NCBI GenBank assembly: GCA_002269645.1
Contig: NIVC01001886.1
Location: forward strand, 115,128 to 179,127
DNA from: Macrostomum lignano
Lineage: Eukaryota
Reading direction: 5' to 3'
DNA: 64,000 nucleotides
Part shown: positions 6,199-50,430 of the stretch, one piece after another
How the letters are laid out: every line of letters starts with the position of its first letter
Numbering within the stretch: position 1 is the stretch's first letter
Translations under genes and position numbers: made by a program
The notes under the pieces: generated by a model
The model's input: only the letters and a program-made list of their open reading frames with translations
What the model was told of the DNA's origin: nothing
Databases searched by the model: none

Positions 6199-6323
6199 GT
6201 CTACCCACTGCTTTAAATTTTGGCAATAAGGGATTGCCAAATTTTTTTGCATTTTACTTGTAGACACAGCCATTATAACCCTGAGTTGTGGTATAGGCCT
6301 AGTAACAAACTAGCAATCTTTGC

Positions 6324-6644
6324 CCCTATTGCAGCCAAGGTCTGAACCGCGCCGGACGCCCCTCTTTCCCGCGCCAGACATCTACCCGTACCGCGCCAGG
6401 GCCAGTCCCCAGGATCAGTGATTTGGTTCAATTAATCAGTCAATGGCTCGCATCAATCGACGTTGACCCGGCCCTTTGTTGCCACCAGTCGCCGAAGCAC
6501 CTGCCACGCCGCCGCGCGCCGCCGCCACACGCCACGCCACCGCGCGCCGCCGCCACGCGCCGCGCCGCCGCCGCGCGCCGCGCCGCCGCCAGGCCAATCC
6601 GCGCCGGACGCCGTCCACGAAAATGGCCATTGGCTGCAATAGGG
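6324..6644. mobile_element. MITE, 15-bp TIR CCCTATTGCAGCCAA, 8-bp TSD ATCTTTGC
   Basis: Perfect TIRs at 6324-6338 and 6630-6644; exact TSD at 6316-6323 and 6645-6652. Confidence 0.92.
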
Positions 6645-6761
6645 ATCTTTGCCCCCCGATGGGGGACATCTAAATAGAATATCTGTTCTCTAAAAGTAAC
6701 AAAAAGACAGCGAAATAAAGCTTTCACAAAGACAACAGACATTCTATCTGTAAAGAAAACA

Positions 6762-7425
6762 TCCCCAGACAGCATGCAAGCATCTCCCAGATAGCATGCA
6801 AGCATCTCCCAGATAGCAAGCATCCCCCAAATAGCAAGAATCCCCCAGATAGCAAGCATCCCCAGACAGCATGCAAGCATCTTCCAGATAGCAAGCATCC
6901 CCCAGATAGCAAGCATCCCCAGACAGCATGCAAGCATCTCCCAGATAGCACGAATCCCCTAGATATAGCAAGCATCCCCAGACAGCACGCAAGCATCCCT
7001 CAGATAGCAAGAATCCCCCAGATAGCAAGCATCTCCCAGATAGCAAGAATCGCCCAGATAGCAAGCATCTCCCAGATAGCAAGAATCGCCCAGATAGCAA
7101 GCATCTCCCAGATAGCAAGAATCGCCCAGATAGCAAGCATCCCCAGACAGCATGCAAGCATCCCCAAACAGCATGCAACCATCCCCCAGATAGCAAGCAT
7201 CCCTGGATACAAAGAATCCTTATAGATAGCTAGCAACCCCCTCTCAGATGGCAAGTACCCTCCACTCCCCAAGAGCAAGCATCCCCCAATAGCAAGTTAC
7301 CCCAGATAGCAAGCATTCTTCCGATAGCAAGCATCCCTCCCCCCAATAGCAAGCATCACTCAGATAGCAAGCATCCCCCTGATAGCAAGTATCCATCCTT
7401 AAATAGCAAGCATCCACCAGACATC
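6762..7425. repeat. About 18-bp minisatellite (CCCAGATAGCAAGCATCT)n with longer variants
   Basis: Tandem units; explains the repetitive ORFs at 6724-7278. Confidence 0.9.
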
Positions 7426-8424: not shown

Positions 8425-11400
8425 TAGTGGTGGATCCAGGATTTTTTAAGTAGGGGGGGTGGGCAAATTTTGGATACTGAAACCGAAACTAGAAAAAAAA
8501 GTAATATTTTGTTCATATACAGAAAATGATTTTTAGCTATTTCAATTGATTGCAAAAGTTTAATTTTGGTTGAATCACTAAATTTCATTTATATTTTAAT
8601 TGTTACATGCAGTGCAGAAGAGCATTAAAAATGAGATAGTTAATAAGCAGCTTTTTAGTAGAGGAGTGGATTTTAAGTCACTTATTGCATGCTTTCCCTG
8701 CTGACACTTATTGTTATTGTTGATTCAATCATATTCAAATATAATGAGACAACACAATTGGCATTGCAAATGGGCATTAGCAGTTTGTCGTATCAAAAGC
8801 AGCATTTAAATTTTAATGCATTATTACAACTACTTGTTTGTACAAGTATGATGCATACATGCAGGGATGTAAGCAAACTGGAACAGGAACTGAAGCAACA
8901 GAAAAACAATACATTATACATATGATCTATAACATCTAGTGTCCGTCTAGAAGACAATCAGCAACATCGAAAAGTTGCCATTATACATGTAGAAGATTCT
9001 GTCTATGATTGCCACTTTTGAATGAAGGTAAAGTCTTTAAACCTTTGCAAATGATGCAACTTAGCTCGTAGCTACGCCGGGGCAGACTTGAGTTGAGAAG
9101 AATGAAGTGGGGGGGGAGCAGTGTGTGAGGGTTGGACAGATGAATTTAAAGCTTCCCCAATCCACTTTCTCTTTCAGAATAGTCCAAGGGAAATTGCTCA
9201 CTTGCGCATAGTGGCGACTTTTCAATGTTGCTGAGGATATATATATAGCTCATATGTAATATGCAATTTTCAACTATAACTTTTGAATTTACATATATTA
9301 AATTTGAATGAATATTCATATAAAATGATTGGACACTATGTGAGTTTCAAAGTCACTGCGCTAAAGCAATTAGTAGTTAAAGCAGGCCCAGCAATTGACA
9401 CCTTTGACAGAAACTTCTCAACAGTAGCAGATATATTGTGCCTGTGGTATCACAAATCATGTCCCTATGGATGAAGGCCAATGCGAGTCCATTCAACTGC
9501 TCTTCTCTCATTGTGCTGCGCAAGTAATTCTTTAAGAATTTCAGCAAAGAGAAAGATTTTTCTCCAGTGGCAGTGTAGACAGGCAACATTGTGTAAAAGT
9601 TCAAGAAGGTGCTGACATTGGGAAACAGGTTATGGTCGCACTCCAAGATGGTCTTAGTCAAAGTTGTGGGCCATTTCTGTGGGTCCTCCCTTTGCCAAAG
9701 TTGCATCCACTGGTTAAATTCTGCTTCAACCTCCTCTTCCTCTTGGCTTGGTAGAACTAAAGCAAAGTGCTGTACTGATGGCTTGAGCTAAATGAATGGA
9801 CTTACATGCTTTTTGGCTGTTGCTGGGATAAGGGCACTGAGTCCAGCAGCAATGTCAGAAAGGCGGGAAAATTGGTCTTGCAGATTGACCAGTAGTCTAT
9901 CCAAGAAGGGAACAAAGTTGACCAAATACCAGTAGTCTTTCATATCAGTAGTAGGAAGATTGGCACAATTCTTCTGACATGCAACCTGCCTAGGAGGAGT
10001 GACATCGATTTCAATTGCCTCTGCAGTCTCAAGAATCTTCTCCCATAGCTCACCAAACTTCTCTGCAGACTCTTCTTGCTACTTCTGCAATTGCTCTTGC
10101 ACATGCGCAATTAGAGTCCTGGCACTGAGCAAATCAATTGCGCTCTTCTGGAGTGCTTCTGCCAATCCCTTGGTGAGAGTCAATGTTGCATCCAGAGCCA
10201 CAACTGATACCAAAAACTCTATGTCCATTGAATTAAGCAGAGCTTTTGCATTCATGGATGCTTCTGGGTTGGAATGTTCACAAATTTCTTCAAGAGCTTG
10301 TGTCATTGGTATCAGCAAATGTCTTATTGTTTCAAACACAGCAAATACATATTTTCAATTGCTCCTTTGTGGCCTGACTTGTTGTTTCATCAGCCACAGC
10401 CAGGATGGACACAAACTTTGCACTGTTTATCCGCTCCTTCAGGCAGTCCAGAATTACTTCTCCAATGCACTCAATCAGCTCATTCTGAATTGTCTTGCTA
10501 GTATATTTTGCGTTACTCAGTCCAGAGTGCAGATGCTCCTCTAGCCTCTTGTCTTCTGTGTCCACCATCGCTTGCAGGATCTCTCAAAAGAGACTATCAT
10601 TCTGGCCTGGTTGGTCAGCAGTCTTTAGCACACTATGATCATCTTGGTGTCCCCTAAGAGCAGTTCCACTCCTTGCATAGACTAGGATGGCACGCACAAT
10701 GGAGCTGAGGATATGCCTGTTCTTTGCAATCTGCTCCTGCCTCTGTGTAGCCAATTGACTATCAATATGTTGCTCTGGCATCATTCGCTTGAACTCTTGT
10801 GCTCTTAGTATATTGTCTTTATGGTAGTTTGTATGCTCATGAGCACAGAGATAGCCATTGGCTCCTAAGAGTCTTGCGTACTTTTGCAATGTCTTCCCAA
10901 TTGTTGACCTTGTTGTCCTTGCTGAGTACCAAATAGCATACAAACTTTGCAGAACAAGCCACTCTTTACATGTGAATATGCTAACCGGTTTTTCAGTTAG
11001 ATGACTGTGCCTTAAGAATCTCTTTTCGATTTTTCCCTTTGTTTTTCGCTCTTCAAATGGCATTAGGTAAGAATTAGGGGGCTCCCATGTTTGCGTCAAC
11101 AAAGCTAACTTAGTGGCACTGTCAGCAGCAGCAGCAAGGTCAAATAGACCTATGTCAAAGTCAGACAACTTGCTCACTTGTACCTCATCTGCTTCTTTGG
11201 TAACTCCATTAAGATTAGCATTGCTTTCAGAGGGGCTGGCTTCAGCTTGGTCTGAATTAGAAGTATCAGCAAATTGCAGTTCCAAAGCAGAGTTAGAAAA
11301 ATTCGTAGGTACATGTACCTCAGTATAAGTAGCTGCAGAGGAAGAAATTGGTATCTTGGCTGTGGCAGAAATAGTAGCAGCAGCAGCAGGACCAGATGGG

Positions 11401-15350: not shown

Positions 15351-16092
15351 GGGGTGAATAAGGGGTAGAGCGGGTTCAGGGAATCACTGAAGGGTAGGGT
15401 GTGTTGATTGAAGTAAAGTGGCTAATTAATTAGCAATAACACACAATTACATTGCTTTATGGTCTTAATTCTAGCTAGCTAGATCGTACAAATTAACATT
15501 GAGAGCCCTTCACCTATATTTATTTACTTTAGCCCAGCTCAAAGCAGTGTAGAGAAACGGGTTGCCTAAAAATAGCTATGCATTATTATTTCTGAGTGAG
15601 CACGTTCGCAATTCTATTATCATGAAAGTCTCTATTGACATAGAGTGCGATAAAGGTAAGCTTTAGGCATAGACCTGGCTAGATAGATCGATCGTGCAAC
15701 GGAGACAGTGTATCTGATTCAGAATTGATTACCAATCTAATTATTTCAGACAGTCGCTTATCTTCCAACTGATTCTCCAGTCGAGACAATTACATAATAA
15801 ACTAAAAGTTGTATGTAATATCTCAGCTAGTCCGATGCCCGCTAGCGGGTTAATATCGTATTATACTAGTATATTAAATGATTTTCGCATGCTTCCTTTA
15901 ACTTTGGCTACCTTGCTCTACTGTGTATTTGATGCTTTCTAATTGAAGGTCGAAGTGTGTTACCCCACACATCTAGCTTGCTTGCTAACAATCCGGCTTA
16001 AGAGTGTGTATATTCATACTGTATTAATACCAAAATGATTGCTTATTTTTACTATCTATAATGACTTTCAATTGCACCCAGTATATACCATT

Positions 16093-19459: not shown

Positions 19460-20235
19460 GTGAGGCACTGCTGCCCCATTCCCAGTGTACTGAGTGAGTC
19501 ACTGCTGCCCCATTCCCAGTCTACTGAGTGAGTCACTGCTGCCCCATTCCCAGTCTGTCAGTGAGTCACTGCTGCCCCATTCCCAGTCTACTGAGTGAGT
19601 CACTGCTGCCCCATTCCCAGTGTACTGAGTGAGTCACTGCTGCCCCATTCCCAGTCTACTGAGTGAGTCACTGCTGCCCCATTCCCAGTCTGTCAGTGAG
19701 TCACTGCTGCCCCATTCCCAGTCTGTCAGTGAGTCACTGCTGCCCCATTCCCAGTCTGTCAGTAAGTCACTGCTGCCCCATTCCCAGTCTGTCAGTGAGT
19801 CACTGCTGCCCCATTCCCAGTCTACTGAGTGAGTCACTGCTGCCCCATTTCAGTCTGTCAGTGAGTCACTGCTGCCCCATTCCCAGTCTGTCAGTGAGTC
19901 ACTGCTGCCCCATTCCCAGTCTGTCAGTGAGTCACTGCTGCCCCATTCCCAGTCTGTCAGTGAGTCACTGCTGCCCCATTCCCAGTCTACTGAGTGAGTC
20001 ACTGCTGCCCCATTTCAGTCTGTCAGTGAGTCACTGCTGCCCCATTCCCAGTCTGTCAGTGAGTCACTGCTGCCCCATTCCCAGTCTGTCAGTGAGTCAC
20101 TGCTGCCTCATTTCAGTCTGTCAGTGAGTCACTGCTGCCCCATTCCCAGTCTGTCAGTGAGTCACTGCTGCCCCATTCCCAGTCTGTCAGTGTCTCACTG
20201 CTGCCCCATTCCCAGTCTGTCAGTGTGTCACTGCT
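19460..20235. repeat. 33/37-bp minisatellite (GAGTCACTGCTGCCCCATTCCCAGTCTGTCAGT)n
   Basis: About 23 tandem units. Confidence 0.95.
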
Positions 20236-22238: not shown

Positions 22239-25200
22239 TCACTCTGAGCTAACCTGCGGCCTGCCGCTCACAGCGTCGGCCCGGCAGATCGGGCAGGTGC
22301 GATTGTGTCGCAGCCAGCGGTCAACGCAGCGCACGTGGAATTCGTGACCGCAGGCGAGGCCGCGCAGCTGCTGGCGGGGCTCGAACTCGGCCAGGCAGAC
22401 AACGCAGCTAGCCTGACGGCGAGTGTCCGACTGCCTGCGGCCAGGCTGGTAGCGATAGGCCGGCAGGCTTTCCAGCTCCTCTTTGGCGGCGCCGCGGGGC
22501 CGGCAGCCGCCTACTTGCGCGGCCAGGTGCAGCAAACTGTCCAGATTGCTAGGCTGATGCTGCAGCTGCTGCTGCTGCTGCTGATGATGCTGATGATGGC
22601 GGTGCTGTTGATGCGCCTGCTGTTGCGAATGCTGATGATGATGCAGCAGGTGCTGATGAAGATGATGCTGACTGTGCGCGCTGCCAGCCGCTGACGATGA
22701 AGCACCGGTGCCGGCAGTTGTGGAGGCTGCGTTGTCTAGCAAAGCCAGGAAATGCAACAGCAGGCCGGGATAGGGGGCCGGCGGGCAGCAGTAGTAGCCG
22801 GTGGGACCGCCCAGCTGGTAGGAGCCGGCCGGGTAGTACAGAGGGCCACCATAGTGCTGCTGCTGCTGCTGTTGCTGCTGCTGGTACACTAGCGAGCTGG
22901 TCAGGTAAGCACCCCCGAGCAAGTGTGCGCCGCTGCTGCCGCCGCTAGCTCCGCTGCCACCGCCAGCGGCTGCCGATGCTGCAACGGCGGCCGCGGAAGC
23001 AGCTGTAGCCGCGGCAGAAGCCGCAGCCGCCGCCGCAGCAGCAGCAGCAGCTGCCTGCTGTTGCTGTTGAAGCTGATGCCGCCTATGCTGCTGATACTGG
23101 AAGCCGGCTTCGTTGGCGTCCGCGACTGACGCTCCCGACATCATAGTGGCGGCGGGCAGGCCGGTCGGCTGGCGCTGATGAATCTGCTGCTGATATTGCT
23201 GTTGCTGCTGCTGCTGCTGTGTCAGTTGCTGATGATGTCGACGGCGTAGCTGAGGACTGCAATGGGGGTCAGAACACTACTATTAGTAATGGTATAGCTT
23301 GCTTATAGGGAGTTGTAGATACTGGATAAGTGGCTTTTTTAAGCGCCAGAAACGCACTACTATTTGGTAAATTGAAAACCAGGAAGCCAGCTGCACTGCT
23401 GACCCTTTCTAAACAACTGAGTCGCAGAAGCCTGCATACCCCCTGTTTACAGATCTACTACTATTTTTTGTGAATTGTCGATTCTAGGAAGAATAAGTTT
23501 ACCATAGCTCGTACAATGTGCCATTTTGGAGTGCTAGATGGGACGCTTTTTGGAGTGCTAGTTGGGACGCCATTTGGAGTGCTAGTTGGGACGCTTTTTG
23601 GAGTGCTAGTTGGGACGCTTTTTGGAGTGCTAGTTGGGACGCCATTTGGAGTGCTAGTTGGGACGCCATTCAGAGTGCTAGTTGGGACGCCATTTGGAGT
23701 GCTAGTTGGGACGCCATTTGGAGTGCTAGATGGGACGCTTTTTGGAGTGCTAGTTGGGACGCCATTTGGAGTGCTAGATGGGACGCTTTTTGGAGTGCTA
23801 GTTGGGACGCCATTTGGAGTGCTAGATGGGACGCTTTTTGGAGTGCTAGTTGGGACGCTTTTTGGAGTGCTAGTTGGGACGCCATTTGGAGTGCTAGTTG
23901 GGACGCCATTCAGAGTGCTAGTTGGGACGCCATTTGGAGTGCTAGTTGGGACGCCATTTGGAGTGCTAGATGGGACGCTTTTTGGAGTGCTAGTTGGGAC
24001 GCTTTTTGGAGTGCTAGTTGGGACGCCATTTGGAGTGCTAGTTGGGACGCCATTTGGAGTGCTAGTTGGGACGCCATTTGGAGTGCTAGTTGGGACGCCA
24101 TTCAGAGTGCTAGTTGGGACGCCATTTGGAGTGCTAGTTGGGACGCCATTCAGAGTGCTAGTTGGGACGCCATTTGGAGTGCTAGTTGGGAAGCCATTTG
24201 GAGTGCTAGTTGGGACGCCATTTGGAGTGCTAGTTGGGACGCCATTTGGAGTGCTAGTTGGGACGCCATTCAGAGTGCTAGTTGGGACGCCATTCAGAGT
24301 GCTAGTTGGGACGCCATTTGGAGTGCTAGTTGGGACGCCATTTGGAGTGCTAGTTGGGACGCCATTTGGAGTGCTAGTTGGGACGCCATTTGGAGTGCTA
24401 GTTGGGACGCCATTTGGAGTGCTAGTTGGGACGCCATTTGGAGTGCTAGTTGGGACGCCATTTGGAGTGCTAGTTGGGACGCCATTCAGAGTGCTAGTTG
24501 GGACGCCATTTGGAGTGCTAGTTGGGACGCCATTTGGAGTGCTAGTTGGGACGCCATTTGGAGTGCTAGTTGGGACGCCATTTGGAGTGCTAGTTGGGAC
24601 GCCATTTGGAGTGCTAGTTGGGACGCCATTCAGAGTGCTAGTTGGGACGCCATTTGGAGTGCTAGTTGGGACGCCATTTGGAGTGCTAGATGGGACGCTT
24701 TTTGGAGTGCTAGTTGGGACGCCATTTGGAGTGCTAGATGGGACGCTTTTTTGAGTGCTAGTTGGGACGCCATTTGGAGTGCTAGATGGGACGCTTTTTG
24801 GAGTGCTAGTTGGGACGCCATTTGGAGTGCTAGATGGGACGCTTTTTGGAGTGCTAGTTGGGACGCCATTTGGAGTGCTAGATGGGACGCTTTTTGGAGT
24901 GCTAGTTGGGACGCTTTTTGGAGTGCTAGTTGGGACGCCATTTGGAGTGCTAGTTGGGACGCCATTTGGAGTGCTAGTTGGGACGCCATTTGGAGTGCTA
25001 GTTGGGACGCCATTTGGAGTGCTAGTTGGGACGCCATTTGGAGTGCTAGTTGGGACGCCATTTGGAGTGCTAGTTGGGACGCCATTTGGAGTGCTAGTTG
25101 GGACGCCATTTGGAGTGCTAGTTGGGACGCCATTTGGAGTGCTAGTTGGGACGCCATTCAGAGTGCTGGTTGGGACGCCATTTGGAGTGCTGGTTGGGAC

Positions 25201-28200
25201 GCCATTTGGAGTGCTAGTTGGGACGCCATTCAGAGTGCTAGTTGGGACGCCATTCAGAGTGCTAGTTGGGACGCCATTTGGAGTGCTAGTTGGGACGCCA
25301 TTTGGAGTGCTAGTTGGGACGCCATTTGGAGTGCTAGTTGGGACGCCATTTGGAGTGCTAGTTGGGACGCCATTTGGAGTGCTAGTTGGGACGCCATTTG
25401 GAGTGCTAGTTGGGACGCCATTTGGAGTGCTAGTTGGGACGCCATTTGGAGTGCTAGTTGGGACGCCATTCAGAGTGCTGGTTGGGACGCCATTCAGAGT
25501 GCTAGTTGGGACGCCATTCAGAGTGCTAGTTGGGACGCCATTTGGAGTGCTAGTTGGGACGCCATTTGGAGTGCTAGTTGGGACGCCATTTGGAGTGCTA
25601 GTTGGGACGCCATTTGGAGTGCTAGTTGGGACGCCATTTGGAGTGCTAGTTGGGACGCCATTTGGAGTGCTAGTTGGGACGCCATTTGGAGTGCTAGTTG
25701 GGACGCCATTTGGAGTGCTAGTTGGGACGCCATTTGGAGTGCTAGTTGGGACGCCATTTGGAGTGCTAGTTGGGACGCCATTTGGAGTGCTAGTTGGGAC
25801 GCCATTTGGAGTGCTAGTTGGGACGCCATTTGGAGTGCTAGTTGGGACGCCATTTGGAGTGCTAGTTGGGACGCCATTTGGAGTGCTAGATGGGACGCTT
25901 TTTGGAGTGCTAGTTGGGACGCCATTTGGAGTGCTGATAATCCACAATGCAGTTTGGCCGCACCACAGCTGTCTAAGAAGACACGAGCGCAGCTGTTTAA
26001 GCATTCGATTAGCGTTGAGATGCCGCGACACCGAACGGCCCAGTGAGTGCAGAATCTGCCTAACAACGGGCGTCAAGCCCAGGTCCGACCTGTCCAAGCA
26101 CCGCAACAGCAGGCTGGCGTGCAGCCAAGTTGGCCGGCCGGCCAGCTGATGCCTGCGGACATAATCGGACAGGGCCGAGCCGAGGCAGCAGGCCGGGTCA
26201 ACGCCGGCAGCGGAGGCGACACCAGCCAGAGCGGCTCCGGCCAGAGGATCAAGAGCTAACCGATGCCCGGCCCAGTTAACGAAGCTGGCGTAGAACTGGG
26301 CGTAGAGCGACTCCAACTGCTGCTGGTGCTGCATCTCTCCGAGTACAAGCCAGCCAATATAGATCGAGTGTATTATTCTTCTAGTATAGTAGTAGTAGCC
26401 GATAGTAGAATTCTCGGGCGTCTTGACTGCCATTACCATGCCTTTTATATACATATATACATACATGCAGCCTATGCAGCAGCAAGCAGGGCGGGCAGCT
26501 GTTTAGTCATTGTGTGCGCGGCGCCCGCGGTTCTGCCAGCCCCTAGCCGGGCCGGCCCAAGCCCCAATACAGACAGGCCTGCGCACGCCGCCCGCACACA
26601 CAGCATTGGCGGAGGGTTGAGAGAGAGAGATAGGGAAGGCACGATTGGGGCCCTCCAGGAAGGCACGTGGACACTTGTATTAGCAATGCGCGGGGGGGGT
26701 AGATGCTACAGGCAAGAGAGGGAGGTGCAGGACCGTGCAAGTTGGTGAGGGTGGGGGTGCACCAGGGTTGAAGTCAAGTTTGACTTCTTCTTCACAATAA
26801 AAAGAGAGTTCAGACGGGCTGTTGCAGCCGAACCCCCCCCCCCTAAACTTGCAACCCAGTAGGCCCCTATTGCAGCGCATGGCTTAAGTATGCCAGACGC
26901 CTACACAACCTGCGCCACACTGTGAAATGACTTACCTGTGAAAGAAACCCTAAAGCAAAATTAACGCAGTTTTGGGTAAACGGCAGGAGTAACTATGACT
27001 GTCTTATCAAGCCTAAATGCCTCGGCATCTAATTAGTACCGCGCCGCGCCGTACTAATCGCCGCGCGCCGTACGCGCCGCGCCGCGCCGTATTAGATCCG
27101 CGCCGGACGCCGTCCGCCAAAATGCCCATGCGCTGCAATCAGGCAGTAGGCCAGATGCCGCAAGCCAAGGTTCCTTGTCCACAGGTCTGTGCTGGCCGGC
27201 ACATAAATATATATACTCGAACATGCGAGCATAAATTATATACATACAACCGATAGCTTTGTTTTTTGTCGGTATCGGAATTCACCTTACCAACTGGTCA
27301 ATAGATTTATTATCTCTCTAGTCTGGGGGGTCGTGCTGACGGTCTTTGTAGCTCGATTGAAGTACTAACAAATAACAAAGACTCGCATTTGGCGCGCTTT
27401 TATACGCAGCAATGTGTTGAAAGCGGAGACGCATCCAGAGAGAGAGAGAGAAAGATTTTTCGATAGGAATGCCAGACTGCCGACCCAATGCAGAGATAAA
27501 TTACGCAATCAATTCTCTCAACGTGAAATAGCTTACGCGTGCATAATTAGTTTATCTAAAGCAAAATGCTAATAACTGCATTAAATGATTGCTGCGCTCT
27601 GCAATTCTTTTGCCTATTGATAAACAATGTGCTAAGCAGTTTTAGTTAAACTGTCCATTCTGGGATAAATGTGTCACGAAATGTGCTAGTTGGGGGCGCC
27701 ATTCAGAGTGCTAGTTTGGGCACCATTCAGAGTGCTAGTTGGGGCGCCATTCAGAGTGCTAGTTTGGGCACCATTCAGAGTGCTAGTTGGGGCGCCATTC
27801 AGAGTGCTAGTTGGGGCGCCATTCAGAGTGCTAGTTGGGGCGCCATTCAGAGTGCTAGTTGGGGCGCCATTCAGAGTGCTAGTTGGGGCGCCATTCAGAG
27901 TGCTAGTTGGGGCGCCATTCAGAGTGCTAGTTGGGGCGCCATTCAGAGTGCTAGTTGGGGCGCCATTCAGAGTGCTAGTTGGGGCGCCATTCAGAGTGCT
28001 AGTTGGGGCGCCATTCAGAGTGCTAGTTGGGGCGCCATTCAGAGTGCTAGTTTGGGCACCATTCAGAGTGCTAGTTGGGGCGCCATTCAGAGTGCTAGTT
28101 TGGGCACCATTCAGAGTGCTAGTTGGGGCGCCATTCAGAGTGCTAGTTGGGGCGCCATTCAGAGTGCTAGTTGGGGCGCCATTCAGAGTGCTAGTTGGGG

Positions 28201-31200
28201 CGCCATTCAGAGTGCTAGTTGGGGCGCCATTCAGAGTGCTAGTTGGGGCGCCATTCAGAGTGCTAGTTGGGGCGCCATTCAGAGTGCTAGTTGGGGCGCC
28301 ATTCAGAGTGCTAGTTGGGGCGCCATTCAGAGTGCTAGTTGGGGCGCCATTCAGAGTGCTAGTTGGGGCGCCATTCAGAGTGCTAGTTGGGGCGCCATTC
28401 AGAGTGCTAGTTGGGGCGCCATTCAGAGTGCTAGTTGGGGCGCCATTCAGAGTGCTAGTTGGGGCGCCATTCAGAGTGCTAGTTGGGGCGCCATTCAGAG
28501 TGCTAGTTGGGGCGCCATTCAGAGTGCTAGTTGGGGCGCCATTCAGAGTGCTAGTTGGGGCACCATTCAGAGTGCTAGTTGGGGCGCCATTCAGAGTGCT
28601 AGTTGGGGCGCCATTCAGAGTGCTAGTTGGGGCGCCATTCAGAGTGCTAGTTGGGACGCCATTCAGAGTGCTAGTTGGGGCGCCATGGCAAGTACCAACA
28701 AAAAGCATATATAAGAGGTTCCAGAAGCAGTACACAGATGCCAAAAATCTCAGTATAAGAAAGTATTTACCTGGCTCTTTGCTGGTGACCCAGCGACCCG
28801 CTCGCGCCGCCGTTGCGTCTAGAAGTTGCAGAAGACGACGCCGAGGAAGCCGAGGCAGAGAAAGACGGGCCGGCGAAGGCCGCAGATGCAGTGGCGGCAC
28901 CGCCGGGCGCGGGAGCGGCCGCCGATCGGTGCAGCGAAGCAGCAGCGGCCGCTGCCGCAGCGGCTGCCGCAGCCCAGGACGCTCCCGTCGGCTCGTCTAC
29001 GCCGCGGGGACAGGCGGCGGCCCCGGCTGCTACGGCGGACGGCGGTTGCGGTTGCGAGGAAGTCTGGCCGCTGGCCAAATTAACATCCGCTGCTACGCTG
29101 CTGGACGACAGGCGGAGCTTCTTGCGCGACGGCGGAGCTGCGTCTGTGCCCTGATTGTATGGATAGTTAGCGAATAAGTTGATTTATTTCTTGAAATACC
29201 CATAATAACTAATCGTTCCTTGGTAGTTAGTTAATCAAACGAGCGCTTCTCACCTTGCCAGTGAGGTGCCGGCCAGCACCGCAATTGTTCTCGCTGGTCA
29301 CGGCGGCAATTGCGGAGGACGCCGGCGGCGGCGGTGGCGGCAAAAGAGGCGCCGTCGCGGCGGCGGCAGACGGGACTACGGCGGCACCTGCGGCGGCCGC
29401 CACTGGGGTGAGTCGGTGCAGCCATTCGCTAGCCAGCTCTGCCAAAAGATGACAAAAAATGCACAATGACAAAACTGTCGGGACACGATTCTCAGGCAAA
29501 GCAGACAGATTACAGGATCAAATTGCAATGACCCCAATCCGATTTTTTATCGGAATATCGGAATATCAATAGATCCTAGAATCCCGATCACTAATCCTAG
29601 AATCCCGATCACTAATCCTAGAATCCCGATCACTAATCCTAGAATCCCGATCACTAATTCTAGAATCCCGATCACTAATTCTAGATTCACGATCACTAAT
29701 TCTAGATTCACGATCACTAATTCTAGATTCACGATCACTAATCCTAGAATCCCGATCACTAATCCTAGAATCCCGATCACTAATCCTAGAATCCCGATCA
29801 CTAATCCTAGAATCCCGATCACTAATTCTAGAATCCCGATCACTAATTCTAGATTCACGATCACTAATTCTAGATTCACGATCACTAATCCTAGAATCCC
29901 GATCACTAATCCTAGAATCCCGATCACTAATCCTAGAATCCCGATCACTAATCCTAGAATCCCGATCACTAATCCTAGAATCCCGATCACTAATCCTAGA
30001 ATCCCGATCACTAATTCTAGAATCCCGATCACTAATTCTAGATTCACGATCACTAATTCTAGATTCACGATCACTAATTCTAGATTCCCGATCACTAATT
30101 CTAGATTCACGATCACTAAGCCTCCAATCCCGATCACTGGCCTAGAAATCCGATCCCTAATTTTAAAGATCCTGATCACTAATCTAATTCGAATCCTTCA
30201 GCCACTCCGCCAATTCCGAATCCCGAAATCCCGGCTCAAAATGATCTATTAGAAATGTTACAACATTAGAAATAGTAACGCTAGAAACCCACCCGCCTAG
30301 ATGAAGTTGAGTCAGAACTCAGAATTATAGAATTATATCCCGGATCAGAAGAGGTACAGTTGAGAAGCAAGAAGACACAGACGGTTGCAAAGGAAATGTA
30401 AAAAGGCGGGAACGTGGCAAGGAGAGTTAGGTTGCAAAGTAGGAGAGAGAGAGTAGGAAAGGGTCGAGGATAGGACTCGGGACTCAGCGGGAAACAGCGG
30501 CAGCAGCAGCCGGAGGCCGGAGCAGCAGACAGCAGAGGGGAGGAGGTAGAGTCTACCCAACCCAACCCCCTGAGCTACACACGGGCCGGGAGCGTGGCAA
30601 CCTCCACAGGGTTTCTCTTCTCTTCGTAAACCAAGGCCTTCAAAGCTCCCCCTTCCCTCCCTCTCCCCCTCTCCTAGCGACTCGGAGAGAATTTTTTCCG
30701 TTCTTTCTCTCTTCTCTCGTTTCTAGCTAGCAGGCCGGAGCTCCGCTCCCACCGTGTACCGCGTGAGTCACTGAGAGACTGAGCGGAGCCGGTCGCATGG
30801 CCGGGGGGGGGCGCAGTAGGGGGGTTGGAGAGGCAGGAGAGGAAAGAAGAGAAGCCCCAAGCCCAGTGGAGCAGTATCGCAAATGGGGACCACCCTCGCG
30901 GGGCCACTCTAACGCTCTCACTCGGTCTAGGCAACTAAGAGCAGAGGCTTTAGAAGCGGACCAAAGTAATGGGCGGGTGGACGGACGGACGGGGAGGTCT
31001 AGCGCGCGGGCGGGGGCCCTCCGGCTCACACAGAGAGAAGGGAAGACTCAGCCGCCCTGGCAACACGGGACGCAGCACCGGAATCAGACACACACGCACA
31101 CAAAGGCAGACACACACACAGGGAGACGTCAGTCATTTTGTCCAGCCGTTTCGAACACCGAAAATTTTCCAGTTCTTACTCTTTATTAGTCGGTCGGCAG

Positions 31201-33123: not shown

Positions 33124-34136
33124 AATTATGCTGCATAAATTAAATTTTCCTTTAGAACTGTCAGAGAAGAAAAAATAAAGTCTTAAACTATGGCTCTAAA
33201 ATTATAGCCTAAGATGAATTTTTGAGAATATTGTATACAGAGTATAAGTAGAAGTTCCAAGTAGAATAGTTGGTATCCATGTAAAATACATACTAGATAG
33301 AAGTAGCAAAGATTAGTACATTTTCTAATAGTTTCTGTAGTAGTATAGATTTTTTATTTTAGTATAGTTGTTTAAACCATATTTTATCATTTGGCATATG
33401 ATGCCATGATCTTGAAAATGGTCAATAGTTGAGTAGAATAAAAGGAATAATAAGGACATATAATATATAATATTGTAGATCATGCATATATGCACATTGT
33501 CTGCTTTAACCTTGGATATATGAATATACATTGATCAGAATTGCAAATATTGATTGGCATATATACAAAGGGGTATTAGGCTATTTGACTATTGGCACAA
33601 TTCAGAATGAAAGAATTAAATAAATAAACTTAGAATAAGTTAATTAAATATATCTATTGTTTAAATTTATGCTAATATAGTTTTTGAAAATAAACAATAT
33701 AACTAATAAACTAATATTATAAACATTTGGTACAAAAATTTCATTTTAAAATAATCATGAATTATCTCTACAATTTCAAATATAAATTTCTATTTCTAAA
33801 ATACTTTCAACTTATTTTGTATATAGGATAACATTGTTTTGTTTTGTCTTAGACCTTAATTAATTAGTTCATTTAGTATATATAACATAGTTTTATATGT
33901 TGTAACTTTTATACTAACATGCATTATACATATCCATATTCTATTGAATTATTAATCAATTCAAGCATGACAAGTATGGTACATAATTAGTAAGCAGTGT
34001 GTAATTGGCATATAAACAAAAAATCACCCTATTGTGTATTTTAGCATTAATTCAACATGGACATGGTTTCAGATTCCAACTCTAAATTATTATAACTGTT
34101 TTTTGCATTTTTCAGCCAATGGTAGGTTAAACTGCA

Positions 34137-34535
34137 CAAAGAGCTTGCGTGCACGGCAGCCGTTCATGTAAGCTCAGAATTGCGTGCACGGCGGCTATCT
34201 ACCTAGTGCTTTATTTGCATGTATGCAGCCGTCTACCTAGTGTTGTGATTGCGTGCATGGCAGCCGGCAATTGGCCGGGACTGGGGCCCTTAAATCCACG
34301 CATTGGCATTGGCAAACCTAATTAAAAAATATTTTTACTATATTGTTTTATAATGTTTTATTCCCCGTACACCATGGATGGACTACAAATGTAATCTTAA
34401 TTCATTGTTATTTTTGTTAACTTGAATATTAATTCAAATAGTATATGACTTACTATATAAGCCTATAAGATATAGCTCTGCCGCGCACGCAATTCTGAGC
34501 TTACGTAAACGGCGGCCGTGCACGCAAGCTCTTCG
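34137..34535. mobile_element. Mutator-like MITE, ~58-bp TIRs, 9-bp TSD TAAACTGCA
   Basis: TIR C(A/G)AAGAGCTTGCGTGCACGGC..GTAAGCTCAGAATTGCGTGC; exact TSD at 34128-34136 and 34536-34544. Confidence 0.9.
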
Positions 34536-35258
34536 TAAACTGCAATGCCTACAACAATTATACCTCTCGCAAAGCTTCAGAATAGCATCATCCTGTGCAA
34601 TCTAATATAGTATAATATATAGCTTAGCCTTAGGACATAGATATACTAGTAAAGCCATCTTAATGCTTATTTAGGTCTGTCTCTAGACTAAATTTTAGTT
34701 GGCATATAATAATAATATAATATTGATAATAAAACCAGCTGATATAGACCAGATTAATTGCTATATTTTGACTAAGAGATGAACAAAAATCAGTGGCATA
34801 GCCAGAGTGCTGGAAGACCTGCCCTCTACCCAAAATTTCTAGAAAAAAACCTCTAATTTATACCTCATCTTTCTTGTAGATAGTGCTAAAGACAAAGTAA
34901 ATAGCACCCTAAAAAATTGTAGCTACACCACAAACAGAAAATAAATTAAATGCATACTGCAGCTACTGCTATCATTAATATGATAAAGAAAATTATAAAA
35001 TATAGGCCTAACTTTATGAAACTGTATTGAACTGTAATCTAGCAAAAACTAATTCTAATAAATATTTCCATTTTGGACTTGGACTTGCATTGTAACTTAT
35101 TTATAGATATTCCAATTTCCTAAGTCTAAGATCAGCACTTGTATTCTAGTTTTAAAAAACTCCTATGTTTTAGATTCCTAATTTAAATCGATAACATTTA
35201 ACAATTGCCTTACTGGCATTGCCATTGTGTACATTCCTCATGTTTATGTCGATGTTCC

Positions 35259-37331: not shown

Positions 37332-40300
37332 TTAGTGAATTCCGAGAGCGTGCTCAAGTTCCTGGCGACGCTGAGTTACCTGAAAGTGTAAAGTTAAAAT
37401 GCAGAGAAACTGGAGACTTCAAGCTGATTCAAAACTGCACTAGAATGCACAATTCCGAGAGTCTCTCACCTTGCTAGAGAAGTACCGAGTGGCGGCCTCG
37501 TGCAGCCAGCTGTCCTGATAGAACTCGGCCCGCCTCTCCTCCTCGGGGTTGCCAACCAGATCCGTCATAGTCTTCAAGTCCTGCTTCTGCGACACTAGCC
37601 AGCTGGTGATGAACTGGCGCGGATCCTCGGTGAACTGATTGAAGAAGTCGCGGTGCTGGGCCATCTGGTTGATCTGCTCAATGGTGTCGAACAGTTTTGC
37701 ATCGATGATGGCCAGCTCCTGGGCGCTGGACGTGTTAACTAAGAAACTGTGCGCCATCTGCTTGTAGGGATCGTCAACTTCAACTTCGATCTCGTAGCAA
37801 GCGGTCTTCTTAGCGCCGGGCTCGTTGGAGATCAGGTGATTAATCACAATGGGATCTGGCGGCAGCAGCAGCTGGTGCAGGCGCTGAGGCACGTCGGCAA
37901 AGCGAAGCCGCGGCGGCGGCTGCTGCTGCGGATCGAGCCGGAAGGCTTCGGCCATGCCGGTATCGCAGACAATATAGCTGCGCTCCTGAGGATCCTGCAG
38001 CCGTTTGGTCTTCACGTAGTGCCAGAATGCTAGCAGAATCTGGGCCTTCGTGCCCGACTGGATGCCGAGCAGGCGGGACAGCTGCGGCTGCAGGCGGAAC
38101 TGCGGCGGCTGCTGGTCCAGCATCAGCAGCACCGTGCACTTCACCGGCTTGTCGCCTGGGCGCTTCACCTGACACGGGGATTCGCGTGCGGGATTCGGTG
38201 TTGATGGCAATGAGCTCAAGTCTGAGATATGGATAGCGAGAGTCACGACTGAGACAAGGGATAAAAACAACAGAAACAGGGGATAAAGACACAACTGAGA
38301 CAAGGGATAAAAACACAACAGAAACAGGGGATAAAGACACAACTGAGACAAGGGATAAAAACACAACAGAAACAGGGGATAAAGACACAACTGAGACAAG
38401 GGATAAAAACACAACAGAAACAGGGGATAAAAACACAACTGAGACAAGGGATAAAAACACAACAGAAACAGGGGATAAAGACACAACTAAGAAAGGGGAT
38501 AAAGACACAACTGAGACAGGGAATAAAGACACAACTGAGACAGGGGATAAAGACACAACTGAGACAGGGGATAAATACACAACTAAGAAAGGGGATAAAG
38601 ACACAACTGAGACAGGGGATAAAGACACAACTGAGACAGGGGATAAAGACACAACTGAGACAGGGGATAAAGACACAACTGAGACAAGGGATAAAAACAC
38701 AACAGAAACAGGGGATAAAGACACAACTAAGAAAGGGGATAAAAACACAACTGAGACAGGGGATAAAGACACAACTGAGACAGGAGATAAAGACACAACT
38801 GAGACAGGAGATAAAGACACAACTGAGACAGGGGATAAAAACACAACTGAGACAGGGGATAAAGACACAACTAAGAAAGGGGATAAAGACACAACTGAGA
38901 CAGGGGATAAAGACACAACTAAGAAAGGGGATAAAGACACAACTGAGACAGGGGATAAAAACACAACTGAGACAGGGGATAAAGACACAACTAAGAAAGG
39001 GGATAAAGACACAACTGAGACAGGGGATAAAGACACAACTGAGACAGGGGATAAAAACACAACTGAGACAGGGGATAAATATACAACTAAGAAAGGGGAT
39101 AAATATACAACTAAGAAAGGGGATAAAGACACAACTGAGACAGGAGATAAAGACACAACTGAGACAGGAGATGAAGACACAACTGAGACAGGGGATAAAG
39201 ACACAACTAAGAAAGGGGATAAAGACACAACTAAGAAAGGGGATAAAGACACAACTGAGACAGGGGATAAAAACACAACTAAGAAAGGGAATAAAGACAC
39301 AACTGAGACAGGGGATAAATATACAACTAAGAAAGGGGATAAAGACACAACTGAGACAGGGGATAAATATACAACTAAGAAAGGGGATAAAGACACAACT
39401 GAGACAGGGGATAAAGACACAACTGAGACAGGGGATAAAGACACAACTGAGACAGGGGATAAAGACACAACTGAGACAGGAGATGAAGACACAACTAAGA
39501 CAGGGGATAAAAACACAGCTGAGACAGGGGATAAAGACACAACCGAGACAGGGGATAAAGACACACCTGAAAGCCATCGGTCTCCTGTGTATTAGGTGAC
39601 CGGTGCCACTCAACCAGGTGATTATCCGGGCCGTACAGAGTTTTGTCCAGCTCGATGACCAGACTCTTGAAGTAGCTGGAGAATTTGCGCTTAGCTTTAG
39701 CCGAGTCCCCGGCCCCATCTTCTACTAAGCGGCCTTCGACTCGAACTTCCCAGTTGGGGACAACTGGCTCGGGACCGCCAGGCTCGGCGCTTGGATCCGT
39801 GCCCGGATTGAACTGGTTGCTAATCAGAATGCGCAGCTTGCGGCGCAGCTTTTGCGGCTTCTTCTGGGCCTCTTGGATGGCCAGTTTCTTGCGCAAAATC
39901 ACCTGGTTTAATATGAGGGGGGGGCAGTTGTTACAGCCTTCAGTACATTAGTAGAACTGTTGGGCTCTTTGCTAGCTCCAGATATTAAGTTGCCAACACC
40001 GTACCTCTTAAAAAGGAAGAAGCCACTCTTAATAGCCTAGCTCGTGTCTTTACCCGTCTCTCAGATGTGTCTTTATTTCCTATCTCAGTGGTGCCTATAT
40101 CCCCTGACTTAGTTGTGTCTTAATCCCTTGTCTCTGTTGTGTCTATTCCATTTCATTTTTATCAATATTTCAACAATCAAATAATAACAGTCAGGTAAGT
40201 ATTTTATCTTGGTATAGTTACTTTTTGAATCTTAATTACCAGAGTTAGACTTACTCGAAACTCCCCAAGCCTGAAACTCCCAAGCTCAAAACTTCACAAG

Positions 40301-41060
40301 CTCGAAACTCCCCAAGCTCGAAACTCCCCAAGCTCGAAACTCCCCAAGCTCGAAACTCCCCAAGCTCGAAACTCCCCAAGCTCGAAACTCCCCAAGCTCG
40401 AATCTACGACAAGGTGAAATTCCGAGATTGCGAAATCGACCAGGAGCCCAAAGCCAGACGGACCACAACTCTTATCAATACGTAAAAATGTACCTGGTCC
40501 AGCTTCTTTTCCAGTTTAAGCAGCTCCATATAGCTGGAAGATTCCGGCACCAGCTGTTGGATTCGCTCAGACAGCAGCCGGTCAGCGTGACGGCGCTTTC
40601 GTTTAGCTGATAGCATCGGCATACCAGACTGTTGCTGCTGCTGCTGCTGCTGCTGTGGCGGCGGCCGGGGTGGCGGATAGGGACCACTGCCGCCTCCTCC
40701 CGGCTGCATGTAGCCCGACGACTGACGCTGCTGGGACGAGACGCCGCCTCCGCCTCCGCCGCCGCGTCGAGAAGACGACGACGAAGAAGTCGAGGATGCT
40801 GAAGTCGGCGGAGGCGGCTGCGGCGGCGGAGCCGGACCGACTTGAGCGGGCGGTGGCGGCGGCGGTCCTGGGCGATATTGGGCAGGCGGCCCGCCTGGCG
40901 GCATTGGCGGATAGCCTCCAGGGGGTGCGCCGCTTCCGCCGGCTGCGGCAGGGCCGGGACTGCTGGCGCCTGGCGGGCCGCACGGGAATGCCGGACGAGG
41001 CTGCATATTGTTTGAATTGTTAAACTGCTGGCTGCAATGGGTTGGTACCATGTCACGCAT
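37332..41060 (-). CDS. SMARCD: SWI/SNF subunit SMARCD/BAF60, about 549 aa; exons 41060-40494, 39902-39567, 38168-37470, 37379-37332
   Basis: Motifs [68 protein letters not shown] domain, and [37 protein letters not shown]. All introns are phase 0 GT-AG. Start codon uncertain (41060 or a downstream ATG). Confidence 0.95.
38250..39566. repeat. 24-bp minisatellite (GACACAACTGAGACAGGGGATAAA)n filling SMARCD intron 2
   Basis: About 55 units starting at the donor GT. Confidence 0.96.
40044..40143. repeat. Four degenerate inverted copies of the 24-bp intron-2 unit, in SMARCD intron 1
   Basis: GTGTCTTTACCCGTCTCTCAGATGTGTCTTTATTTCCTATCTCAGTGGTGCCTATATCCCCTGACTTAGTTGTGTC resembles the reverse complement of the 38.3-39.6 kb unit. 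Confidence 0.75.
40255..40402. repeat. 16-bp minisatellite (GCTCGAAACTCCCCAA)n
   Basis: About 9 units in SMARCD intron 1. Confidence 0.92.
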
Positions 41061-41154
41061 TGGAAACACATTTATCGATTAGGAGAGCAGAGAACTTGCT
41101 ACTTTCTAGGAAATACAAATTTCAATTAGAGAAATGGCGTAGACCAATCACTTC

Positions 41155-42422
41155 AGTGTGGCTTCTACCGCTTACTCAATATCACGGGTCCCCCAGTGTG
41201 GCTTCTACCGCTTGCTCAACACGGGTCTCTCAATGTGGCTTCTACCGCTTACTCAATATCACGGGTCCCCCAGTGTGGCTTCTACCGCTTACTCAATATC
41301 ACGGGTCCCCCAGTGTGGCTTCTACCGCTTACTTAATATCACGGGTCCCCCAGTGTGGCTTCTACCGCTTACTCAACACGGGTCCCCCAGTGTGGCTTCT
41401 ACCGCTTGCTCAACACGGGTCTCTCAATGTGGCTTCTACCGCTTACTCAACACGGGTCTCTCAATGTGGCTTCTACCGCTTACTCAACACGGGTCTCTCA
41501 GTGTGGCTTCTACCGCTTACTCAACACGGGTCTCTCAATGTGGCTTCTACCGCTTACTCAACACGGGTCTCTCAATGTGGCTTCTACCGCTTACTCAACA
41601 CGGGTCTCTCAGTGTGGCTTCTACCGCTTACTCAACACGGGTCTCTCAGTGTGGCTTCTATCGCTTACTCAACACCACGGAGTTTCTCTGTATGGCTTCT
41701 ACCGCTTACTCAACACCACGGGGTCTCTCAGTGTGGCTTCTACCGCTTACTCAACACGGGTCCCCCAGTGTGGCTTCTACCGCTTGCTCAACACGGGTCT
41801 CTCAATGTGGCTTCTACCGCTTACTCAACACGGGTCTCTCAATGTGGCTTCTACCGCTTACTCAACACGGGTCTCTCAGTGTGGCTTCTACCGCTTACTC
41901 AACACGGGTCTCTCAATGTGGCTTCTACCGCTTACTCAACACGGGTCTCTCAATGTGGCTTCTACCGCTTACTCAACACGGGTCTCTCAGTGTGGCTTCT
42001 ACCGCTTACTCAACACGGGTCTCTCAGTGTGGCTTCTACCGCTTACTCAACACGGGTCTCTCAGTGTGGCTTCTACCGCTTACTCAACACGGGTCTCTCA
42101 GTGTGGCTTCTACCGCTTACTCAACACGGGTCTCTCAGTGTGGCTTCTATCGCTTACTCAACACCACGGGGTTTCTCTGTATGGCTTCTACCGCTTACTC
42201 AACACCACGGGGTCTCTCAGTGTGGCTTCTACCGCTTACTCAACACCACAGGGTTTCTCTGTGTGGCTTCTACCGCTTACTCAACACCACGGGGTTTCTC
42301 TGTATGGCTTCTACCGCTTACTCAACACCACGGGGTTTCTCAGTGTGACTTCTACCGCTTACTCAACACCACGGGGTCTCTCAGTGTGGCTTCTACCGCT
42401 TACTCAACACGGGTCCCTCAGT
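41155..42422. repeat. 37/40-bp minisatellite (GTGTGGCTTCTACCGCTTACTCAACACGGGTCTCTCA)n
   Basis: About 34 units immediately upstream of SMARCD. Confidence 0.96.
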
Positions 42423-43313: not shown

Positions 43314-43359
43314 CATGCTTGGGCGCAACCTAGGGATTCACCCTGCCGTTTCTATTGGC

Positions 43360-43408
<49 letters not shown>

Positions 43409-43527
43409 GTCGCTATTGGACAGAATACTAGTCACGTGACTGCTCTCAGCCAATAGCGACTTACATGTGTGTGTGTGTGTGTTGTCAATAGAAACGGCCG
43501 GGTGAATCCCAAGGTTGCGCATGCATG
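43314..43527. mobile_element. Foldback MITE with (CA)n/(TG)n arms and central GTCACGTGAC palindrome; ends related to the CATACATGCGCAAC family
   Basis: Arms GCGCAACC..GGGATTCACCC.GCCGTTTCTATTG.CAAC(AC)nATGTAAGTCGCTATTGG are inverted around 43430-43440. No clean TSD. Confidence 0.75.
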
Positions 43528-48923: not shown

Positions 48924-49117
48924 TATTCAAAGTCTGATTATTAAAAAGCATATATTTAAATCATTACTTAGCTTGGATAGTAAATTACTAAATATACATA
49001 GGGGGGGGGGTATTACCTCAAATAGAAATCAGGCACAAATATTACTCTTCTCATACTTTTCCTTTTGAACAACCCTATTGGAAACAAAGCTCAAATTAGA
49101 CACAAAAGCAGCAGGGC

Positions 49118-49414
49118 CATACATGCGCAACCTCCGAAATTCGGTCGGCCATGCGACTTAGTTTTAACAAAAAAACGACGTAGTTTTTGACCAAAAATGC
49201 GACTTACATGAAAAAAAACCCGAAAGCAAAATTAACGCAACCTTGGGTAAACGGCAGGAGTAACTATAACTGTCTTATTAAGCCAAAATGCCTCGTCAGC
49301 TACTTAGTACTACTAAGTACTAAGTTTTTGGGTGGGCATTTTTGCGACCTCCTTGGTTGGCCGCCAAATTGGTCGGCCGGATCAGCCGACTCGGCCGACT
49401 GTTGCGCATGTATG
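49118..49414 (+). mobile_element. MITE, 14-bp TIR CATACATGCGCAAC, 8-bp TSD AGCAGGGC, carrying the 28S-like segment (49245-49308)
   Basis: Perfect TIRs; exact TSD at 49110-49117 and 49415-49422; core 52/64 to the 28S consensus. Confidence 0.92.
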
Positions 49415-50334
49415 AGCAGGGCTTGTTTTCACACATAAACTTGCAATAATTATTTATAAATATAATAACAAACACATTTGCATACACAACTTCTATGGTT
49501 GGACAATAAAGAAAAACATGTTTTTTAGGCTTAGAATTGCAGTGCCATTTGGCATCAGTCAGAAAGCTCAAAATCAAATAAAATACAATATATTTTTCTA
49601 CCTTTACATTGCTAAGCATCTCTGATCCATAGGAATTGCAAAATTCTATATACTCAATTTTTTAACTTAAAATTACTTTTGAAATCCCAGAAAATCAAAA
49701 TAAACATAAATTTATTGATGTTTCAAAAAAATATATATAAAAAATGGACCTTCTATAAAGGGTGCCAACTTATTGTTTGGGGATCCAAATTAAGGATGCC
49801 AAAATTAAGATTTATGTGTTATAACACATGCAATAAAAAACTAATGATTGATTAATTGCTTTTTATAAATATTTTATTAAATTAACAATGATATTAGACA
49901 ATATATACTTTTAAAAAGTAAAAAAAACATTTATTTATTACCATATTTGCTATTAATATTGCATTTATTTGGTTTACCTATATGATCTATAAACTATACT
50001 GAAGAGTTCTTTAAAGAAATTGTTAGGCTTTGTTATTTAAAATTTCCATGTTAAAGAATTAATATTATTTCTAAATTGATTGTTGCATTAAGCCTATAGG
50101 TAATCATTTAAAATGAATGAATATTAATATATTTTCTTTTTTTCTATTTTAGCTTGACAAGACAAGCTAAAATCATTTTATCTATTGTCTTGTTTCTATT
50201 TTTGCTTTTTTTCAATATATCATTTGGTATAATTATTGGCTTTAAACTCACACTTAGCAAGGCTATTAGTAAGCCTATACTAGAAATTTTTAAAGTTACC
50301 ATATATGCCCAACCTTAAAAAATTTCACCCATCT

Positions 50335-50430
50335 GGTGCAACTTAGTTTTGTCCAGATTTGCAACTTAGTTTCTCCCAATTGCAACTTTGTTCCTTCCAA
50401 TTGCAACTTAGTTCCCCTGATTGTGACTTA
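50335..50430. repeat. Short ~21-bp degenerate tandem repeat (TTGCAACTTAGTT..)
   Basis: 4-5 units. Confidence 0.6.

Follow-up and report, generated by a model that had tools for sequence, protein, structure and literature searches.

A 64,000-nucleotide stretch of the Macrostomum lignano genome (assembly GCA_002269645.1, contig NIVC01001886.1, positions 115,128 to 179,127 of the forward strand; hereafter the window) contains three short, non-coding elements of 266–297 bp, designated E1, E2, and E3, each of which carries an internal block that in part resembles 28S ribosomal RNA (rRNA). All three are bounded by terminal inverted repeats (TIRs) and flanked by exact 8-bp target-site duplications (TSDs), as a preliminary description of this DNA had reported, and the combination of TIRs, a TSD of fixed length, small size, and no coding capacity (the shared block has stop codons in every frame) identifies them as transposable elements of the miniature inverted-repeat kind (MITEs):

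26865–27143, plus strand: E1, a 279-bp MITE of TIR family A; 18-nt TIRs CCCTATTGCAGCGCATGG (26865–26882) and CCTGATTGCAGCGCATGG (27126–27143) with 2 mismatches; perfect 8-bp TSD CAGTAGGC (26857–26864 and 27144–27151).
49118–49414, plus strand: E2, a 297-bp MITE of TIR family B; TIR CATACATGCGCAAC at both ends (49118–49131 and 49401–49414), matching at 14/14 positions; perfect 8-bp TSD AGCAGGGC (49110–49117 and 49415–49422).
51927–52192, minus strand: E3, a 266-bp MITE that belongs to TIR family B and lies in the opposite orientation to E1 and E2; TIRs CATACATGCGCAAC and TATACATGTGCAAC, matching at 12/14 positions with the 2 mismatches on one side; perfect 8-bp TSD TGCACAAC (51919–51926 and 52193–52200).

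The TSDs of E1–E3 are 8 bp long and none of them is TTAA, which sets these elements apart from Pokey and other piggyBac elements, and the presence of TIRs, the lack of an A-tail, and the fixed TSD length set them apart from SINE28-type retroposons. An 8-bp TSD is shared with the hAT superfamily; the TIRs begin with CATAC and CCCTA, differing from the classic hAT motif YARNG, and a CATGCGC/GCGCATG motif is common to both TIR types. E1–E3 are probably mobilised in trans by a transposase of the cut-and-paste type, either hAT-like or P-like, whose insertions duplicate 8 bp of target; superfamilies other than P with 8-bp TSDs are also conceivable; the TIR strings that would bound such a coding partner element are CATACATGCGCAAC or CCCTATTGCAGC.

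MAFFT and pairwise alignments identified a single internal block of 106–116 bp common to E1, E2, and E3 (hereafter the module), in agreement with the shared cargo of ~115 bp reported earlier. Matches to a 31-nt probe from the module were confined to these three places in the window, and shuffled versions of the window gave none. In E2, an internal hairpin forms between the 3′ half of the 28S-like segment and an inverted, incomplete copy of it situated just downstream, and weaker equivalents occur in E1 and E3:

26925–27039, plus strand: module in E1, 115 bp; 28S-like part at 26974–27044.
49195–49310, plus strand: module in E2; 28S-like part at 49230–49308.
52031–52136, minus strand: module in E3, 106 bp; compared with E1 and E2, it has lost 11 bp; 28S-like part at 52033–52096.
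49282–49345, plus strand: internal hairpin in E2, with 30-nt arms that are 73% complementary.

The module has a 64-bp core, which in ungapped comparison with the canonical eukaryotic 28S sequence (GGGTAAACGGCGGGAGTAACTATGACTCTCTTAAGGTAGCCAAATGCCTCGTCATCTAATTAGT) matches at 54/64 (E1), 52/64 (E2), and 55/64 (E3) positions, exactly reproducing the counts of the preliminary description; the other 64-mers of the window, on both strands, match at 16.2 positions on average (sd 3.4), with a maximum of 32. An nhmmer profile built from 72 eukaryotic 28S genes taken from metagenome contigs matched the window at the three modules only (E = 5.2e-16, 7.4e-16, and 1.9e-13), and the core is thus far closer to 28S than would be expected by chance. 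The Rfam model LSU_rRNA_eukarya (RF02543) aligned to E1 over model positions ~2247–2314, which correspond to the H69–H71 region in domain IV of the large subunit (LSU) rRNA, with a score of 22.8 bits (E = 0.0012 for a search of 291 bp), which is under the gathering score of 50 because the 28S piece is so short. To judge from the profile alignments, the homology probably extends ~15 bp further in the 5′ direction in E2 (profile positions 237–315) and 7 bp further in the 3′ direction in E1 (to profile position 322), such that the total length derived from 28S is probably ~64–86 bp. A whole-window Rfam scan revealed no further rRNA piece, the other matches being low-complexity, miRNA-like hits on (CA)n and CAG repeats well under threshold, and no tRNAs were found in the 64-kb window. 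The exact core patterns GGCAGGAGTAACTATRACTGTCTTA and ACGGCAGGAGTAACTATNACTG had no match in JGI metagenomes, IMG/VR, or GTDB genomes, which is uninformative given that these are flatworm-free collections. Two suspected likenesses, that of GTAAGTCGC to the fish V-SINE domain and that of ACTTACCTG to the 5′ end of U1 small nuclear RNA, were dropped, as they had no support from Rfam and were inconsistent in orientation.

All three copies of the 28S-like segment depart from 28S in the same ways: two substitutions, CGGGAG to CAGGAG (G to A) and CTCTC to CTGTC (C to G), both highlighted in the preliminary description, and in addition a rearranged patch at TTAAGGTAGCC and the loss of one G (TAGTGAC to TAGTAC). 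Both substitutions fall on stem pairs of H69 and are non-canonical in the Rfam alignment, such that the native H69 helix is broken. Because E1, E2, and E3 have these derived changes in common, the parsimonious reading is a single capture followed by spread, as had been proposed, and not independent rDNA (ribosomal DNA) debris.

The elements had also been described as one mobile family, and in this respect the account needs revision. E2 and E3 are alignable from end to end, and E1 has only the module in common with them, with 83–87% identity of the module between two families whose termini cannot be aligned. Each family also has members that lack the module, so that three copies with the module and three relatives without it are present in the window:

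6324–6644, plus strand: E1b, a MITE of family A without the module; E1-type TIR (beginning CCCTATTGCAGCC); 8-bp TSD ATCTTTGC (6316–6323 and 6645–6652).
43314–43527, plus strand: M4, a MITE of family B without the module; TIR CATGCATGCGCAAC, subterminal motif GCGACTTAC, degenerate TSD.
50300–50621, plus strand: M5, a MITE of family B without the module; TIRs with 2 mismatches each, TSD matching at 6/8 positions.

M4 and M5 have E2/E3-type termini and the subterminal motif GCRACTTA around a different interior, with four subterminal motifs (GCAACTTA) in M5. At up to 2 mismatches, the E2/E3-type terminus occurs 7 times in the 64-kb window against 0.39 occurrences expected, and GCRACTTA occurs 14 times against ~4 expected, with a concentration in family B elements. 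The existence of module-less members in both families means that the module is neither family-defining nor needed for transposition. In family A, E1b and E1 can be aligned along ~57 bp on the left and ~110 bp on the right, and the space between these arms, taken up by the module in E1, is filled in E1b by unrelated sequence; the comparison indicates that the module was copied between families, replacing the centre of an E1b-like element in E1. The right junction in E1 (...TTAGTAC/CGCGCC...) coincides with GTAC/CGCGCC in E1b, a microhomology of the kind expected of template switching. As the first ~45 bp of the module contain the family B motif GCRACTTA, we infer that the block moved from family B to family A.

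The GC-rich right arm of E1b runs into a minisatellite region, giving rise to spurious long open reading frames (ORFs) at 6440–7196. Within M4, positions 43387–43482 contain a perfect 33-nt palindrome including an (AC)n run, with sub-threshold miRNA-like Rfam hits (mir-3149: 47.9 bits, the gathering score being 100) that are most likely low-complexity artefacts.

A second contig of the assembly, NIVC01000984.1 (locus L124), is 93–99% identical to the window over 27230–51836 and is paralogous to it; contig NIVC01001886.1 itself was matched at 100% identity over window positions 27332–51024. E2 is present there at the same site (2426–2722) and is 100% identical; its insertion is therefore older than that duplication. 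The sites of E1 and E3 are ~90 bp beyond the two ends of the L124 locus, and the paralogue comparison accordingly covers E2. Judging from gene ranges and ORFs, E1 is probably within an intron of a RING-H2 gene, in antisense orientation, and E2 appears to lie upstream, by ~225 bp, of the coding start annotated for the gene of a 996-residue protein. On its antisense strand the module contains a consensus 5′ splice donor (CAG/GTAAGT; CAT/GTAAGT in E2), located on the minus strand in E1 (~26930–26940) and E2 (~49203–49211) and on the plus strand in E3 (~52121–52130). E1 and E2 are antisense to neighbouring minus-strand genes, which places the donor on the sense strand of those transcripts, where it might be exonised.

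The window contains several other features:

34137–34536: a 400-bp MITE with TIR CAAAGAGCTTGCGTGCACGG and TSD TGCAGTTT (minus strand) at 34129–34136 and 34537–34544.
9377–11285, minus strand: a frameshifted hAT transposase relic of the DUF4371/ZMYM1-like type with a hAT dimerisation domain.
8958–9234: a short unit resembling an element, its 27-nt inverted termini (TCAGCAACATCGAAAAGTTGCCATTAT) being 89% complementary, next to the hAT relic.
37440–41069, minus strand: a SMARCD/BAF60 orthologue (SWIB domain) with three coding exons, 100% identical to BOX15_Mlig011519g5; the exons of the 391-aa model are within 40404–41069, 39495–39902, and 37440–38486.

The paralogous contig lacks the 400-bp MITE cleanly and has one TGCAGTTT at the corresponding empty site (~15944–15951), and this pair of filled and empty sites demonstrates recent movement of MITEs with 8-bp TSDs in this genome. 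The inner part of its TIR (TTGCGTGCACGG) resembles that of E1 (TTGCAGCGCATGG). The best database match of the hAT relic is a 650-aa protein encoded on ENA metagenome contigs (53% identity). We considered the relic as a partner of the MITEs and rejected it, as neither the relic nor its closest intact relative (locus L121) has the MITE TIRs; no TIRs were identified for the relic, and no link to E1–E3 was found. Long minisatellite arrays with units of ~21–37 bp occupy 19660–20130, 23500–26050, 27680–28690, 29550–30190, 38240–39570, and 41150–42410; several are intronic (e.g., in the SMARCD gene), they give rise to very long spurious ORFs in several frames and strands, and the two paralogous contigs differ in how many repeat copies they have.

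The explanation that we judge likely is that the 28S-like segment is passenger DNA, captured once by a transposon and later copied between two transposon families. Under this model, cut-and-paste excision of a family B element (with TIR CATACATGCGCAAC and subterminal GCRACTTA) would have left a double-strand gap, and repair of the gap would have switched template to the abundant rDNA, such that ~65–85 bp of 28S (H69–H71) were copied in, once, as filler DNA. The captured piece would then have decayed through the two point changes in H69, the rearranged patch at the insertion site, and the 1-bp deletion, and would also have gained the partial inverted duplication of its 3′ half, while the chimeric element, still mobilised in trans, carried it along passively. 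A later template switch would have placed a 115-bp block, composed of ~45 bp of family B sequence and the 28S-like piece, in the middle of a MITE from the unrelated family A, resulting in E1. Internally rearranged hAT and P elements are the general basis for this repair mechanism. The TIR and TSD anatomy, the homology to 28S, the single origin, the existence of two families with module-less members, and the replaced centre of E1 are shown by the sequences; the route through gap repair and template switching, the direction from family B to family A, and the neutrality of the passenger are what we infer from them.

Several observations weigh against passive carriage. In the E2–E3 pair, the 28S-like segment has 89% identity and no insertions or deletions, against 79% identity and 39 gap columns in the flanks; a core better kept than its flanks runs counter to what MITEs usually show and may point to constraint or recent exchange, although for substitutions alone the contrast, drawn from one pair, is not significant (Fisher p = 0.08). 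Sites that vary within the family cluster in a 10-bp patch at the insertion site (4/9, p = 0.03), and the two shared substitutions allow an alternative 5-bp stem (GGCAG/CUGUC) that is identical in all three copies. E2 is fixed in both paralogous contigs, so that its own mobility is deduced from the TSD. The passenger explanation, likely as we hold it to be, is also based on three copies in the window. Some of these points would be accommodated if the module were a functional conserved domain, comparable to the highly conserved domains of short interspersed elements (SINEs), one of which has also spread in the DNA transposon MER6. It would be kept and exchanged between MITE families for the benefit of the element or the host, putatively through a hairpin that gives rise to 28S-related small RNAs or by offering a site to which a nucleolar or rDNA-binding protein binds. 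The sharing of the module at 83–87% identity by families with unalignable termini is consistent with such a domain, as are the better-kept core, the use of the 3′ half of the 28S-like piece in the hairpin, and whole-element folds that are more stable than those of shuffled sequences (z = −6.4, −3.7, and −2.9), and another case of a conserved domain within a MITE is on record (PMC6887750). We nevertheless consider a functional domain unlikely: the copies number three, the difference in conservation falls short of significance (p = 0.08), much of the fold stability comes from TIR pairing, as in any MITE, and the module-less members of both families also have TSDs, so that the module is unneeded for transposition. 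In addition, the stems are identical in all copies, which makes covariation impossible. The specific form of this proposal, in which the module is under selection and exchangeable among at least two M. lignano MITE families by virtue of hairpin small RNAs or recruitment of rDNA or nucleolar proteins, is quite unlikely in our estimation; if it is correct, the module would be the equivalent, among DNA transposons, of the central domains that are conserved in SINEs.

MITEs commonly arise from autonomous elements via internal deletion, and the 28S piece could accordingly have been captured by an autonomous transposon, for example in an untranslated or subterminal region, with the MITEs inheriting it as deletion derivatives and E1 descending from a related autonomous element, not from MITE-to-MITE transfer. 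The CATGCGC/GCGCATG motif common to the two TIR types would fit related transposases; however, the arms of E1 match E1b on both sides of a replaced centre, which fits secondary acquisition better, and the window contains no autonomous element with either TIR, the hAT relic having no matching TIR. We regard this origin as rather improbable. That the segments are dispersed rDNA pseudogene fragments or chance resemblances unrelated to transposition is scarcely credible: the sequence similarity itself, and nothing more, speaks for it, whereas every copy is within a TIR-bounded unit with an exact 8-bp TSD, all three have the same non-28S flanks and the same derived changes, and the profile E-values are 1e-13 to 1e-16. 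The preliminary description had instead proposed that the elements disperse mimics of the 28S insertion hotspot, acting as decoys or landing pads for R2, Pokey-like elements, homing endonucleases of group I introns, or similar, or guiding the MITE to rDNA, and this we hold to be very improbable. The 15-bp recognition sequence of I-PpoI, which we take to be CTCTCTTAAGGTAGC and to cover the same bases as the Pokey TTAA site, is the least preserved part of the core, with 8/15 bases kept in E1 (CTGTCTTATCAAGCC), 8/15 in E2 (CTGTCTTATTAAGCC), and 9/15 in E3 (CTGTCTTATTAGGGC); E1 and E3 no longer have the canonical TTAA, which in E2 is shifted by two bases, and no copy has an intact recognition and cleavage sequence with TTAA and AAGG/TAGC in place. 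The captured stretch does cover the hotspot, as had been stated (PMC3315735; Rfam and profile alignments), in which Pokey uses a TTAA with the R2 site 4 nt downstream of it (PMC3315735), and outside the I-PpoI site the flanking sequence is well kept (46/49 in E1, 44/49 in E2, and 46/49 in E3; 90–94%). The clustering of mismatches at the insertion site has p = 3e-4 if they are independent events, but may represent one small rearrangement and was given no weight. No R2 or Pokey insertion was found in or near the cores, E1, E2, E3, and the paralogous E2 all being free of inserts, which with n = 4 copies is weak evidence; none of the three MITE insertion sites is in or near rDNA; and no reverse-transcriptase or R2-like ORF was present among the window ORFs of at least 150 aa. 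R2 lineages have been reported from other flatworms, with Macrostomum unmentioned (Kojima et al., 2016; PMC5035012). With ~64 bp at 85% identity, the segment is also neither long enough nor similar enough to work well as a homology guide. With the H69 helix broken and the module dispensable as well, a role as decoy, landing pad, or homology guide is unsupported by anything observed.

The E1–E3 elements are a new example of a known phenomenon, to which they make a modest addition, namely an rDNA module common to two MITE families. The known rDNA-carrying transposons are joined by a cut-and-paste MITE with 28S coding sequence, found in a flatworm model, and the module is a clean, small case of transfer between MITE families with different termini that is useful for repeat annotation in this genome, whose repeats make annotation difficult. 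Copies of the module will give spurious 28S/LSU matches in repeat masking, the design of rRNA depletion, and small-RNA mapping in M. lignano; the module would be of greater importance only if it proves to be selected or to yield small RNAs. The preliminary description knew of no MITE family of this kind: a MITE with a 28S coding fragment is indeed absent from the table of a 2024 review (PMC10946416), and we found no description of M. lignano MITEs in the paper library searched, with prior annotation in Repbase or Dfam being possible.

The rDNA-derived transposable elements listed in that review comprise SINEs and Cassandra/Ajax terminal-repeat retrotransposons in miniature (TRIMs) with 5S promoters, the mammalian retroposon SINE28 with 28S sequence, and Pokey/mPok with repeats from the intergenic spacer (IGS), and most acquisitions of rDNA are regarded as modular reshuffling without benefit to the element (PMC10946416). 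Pokey and mPok, a piggyBac element of Daphnia and its MITEs, resemble E1–E3 in being a DNA transposon/MITE family with internal rDNA-derived sequence (PMC10946416) and in being tied to the same 28S hotspot (PMC3315735). They differ in that the rDNA part of Pokey consists of IGS repeats, its duplications are TTAA, and it inserts into the real 28S site, whereas E1–E3 have 8-bp TSDs, lie elsewhere in the genome at sites without relation to it, and contain the 28S site in degraded form instead of targeting it. SINE28, 5S-derived SINEs, and Cassandra TRIMs are likewise non-autonomous elements with an rRNA-gene fragment in their body (PMC10946416), but they are retroposons that move via an RNA intermediate and have no TIRs; in the 5S cases the fragment provides an RNA polymerase III promoter, a clear benefit, whereas E1–E3 are cut-and-paste elements for which no benefit is evident. 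A short module within a MITE-type DNA transposon that is also found in other element families has a parallel in the V highly conserved domain in MER6 (PMC6887750), which differs in being conserved across metazoans and not derived from rRNA, conservation of the 28S module having been seen in one genome in three copies. In rearranged non-autonomous hAT and P elements with filler DNA, and in Pack-MULEs, host sequence is copied in during repair or replication and then amplified. These are chimeric elements that share modules, as E1–E3 do; what distinguishes E1–E3 is that the piece is ~65–85 bp long, has rDNA as its source, and is shared by two families with different TIRs.

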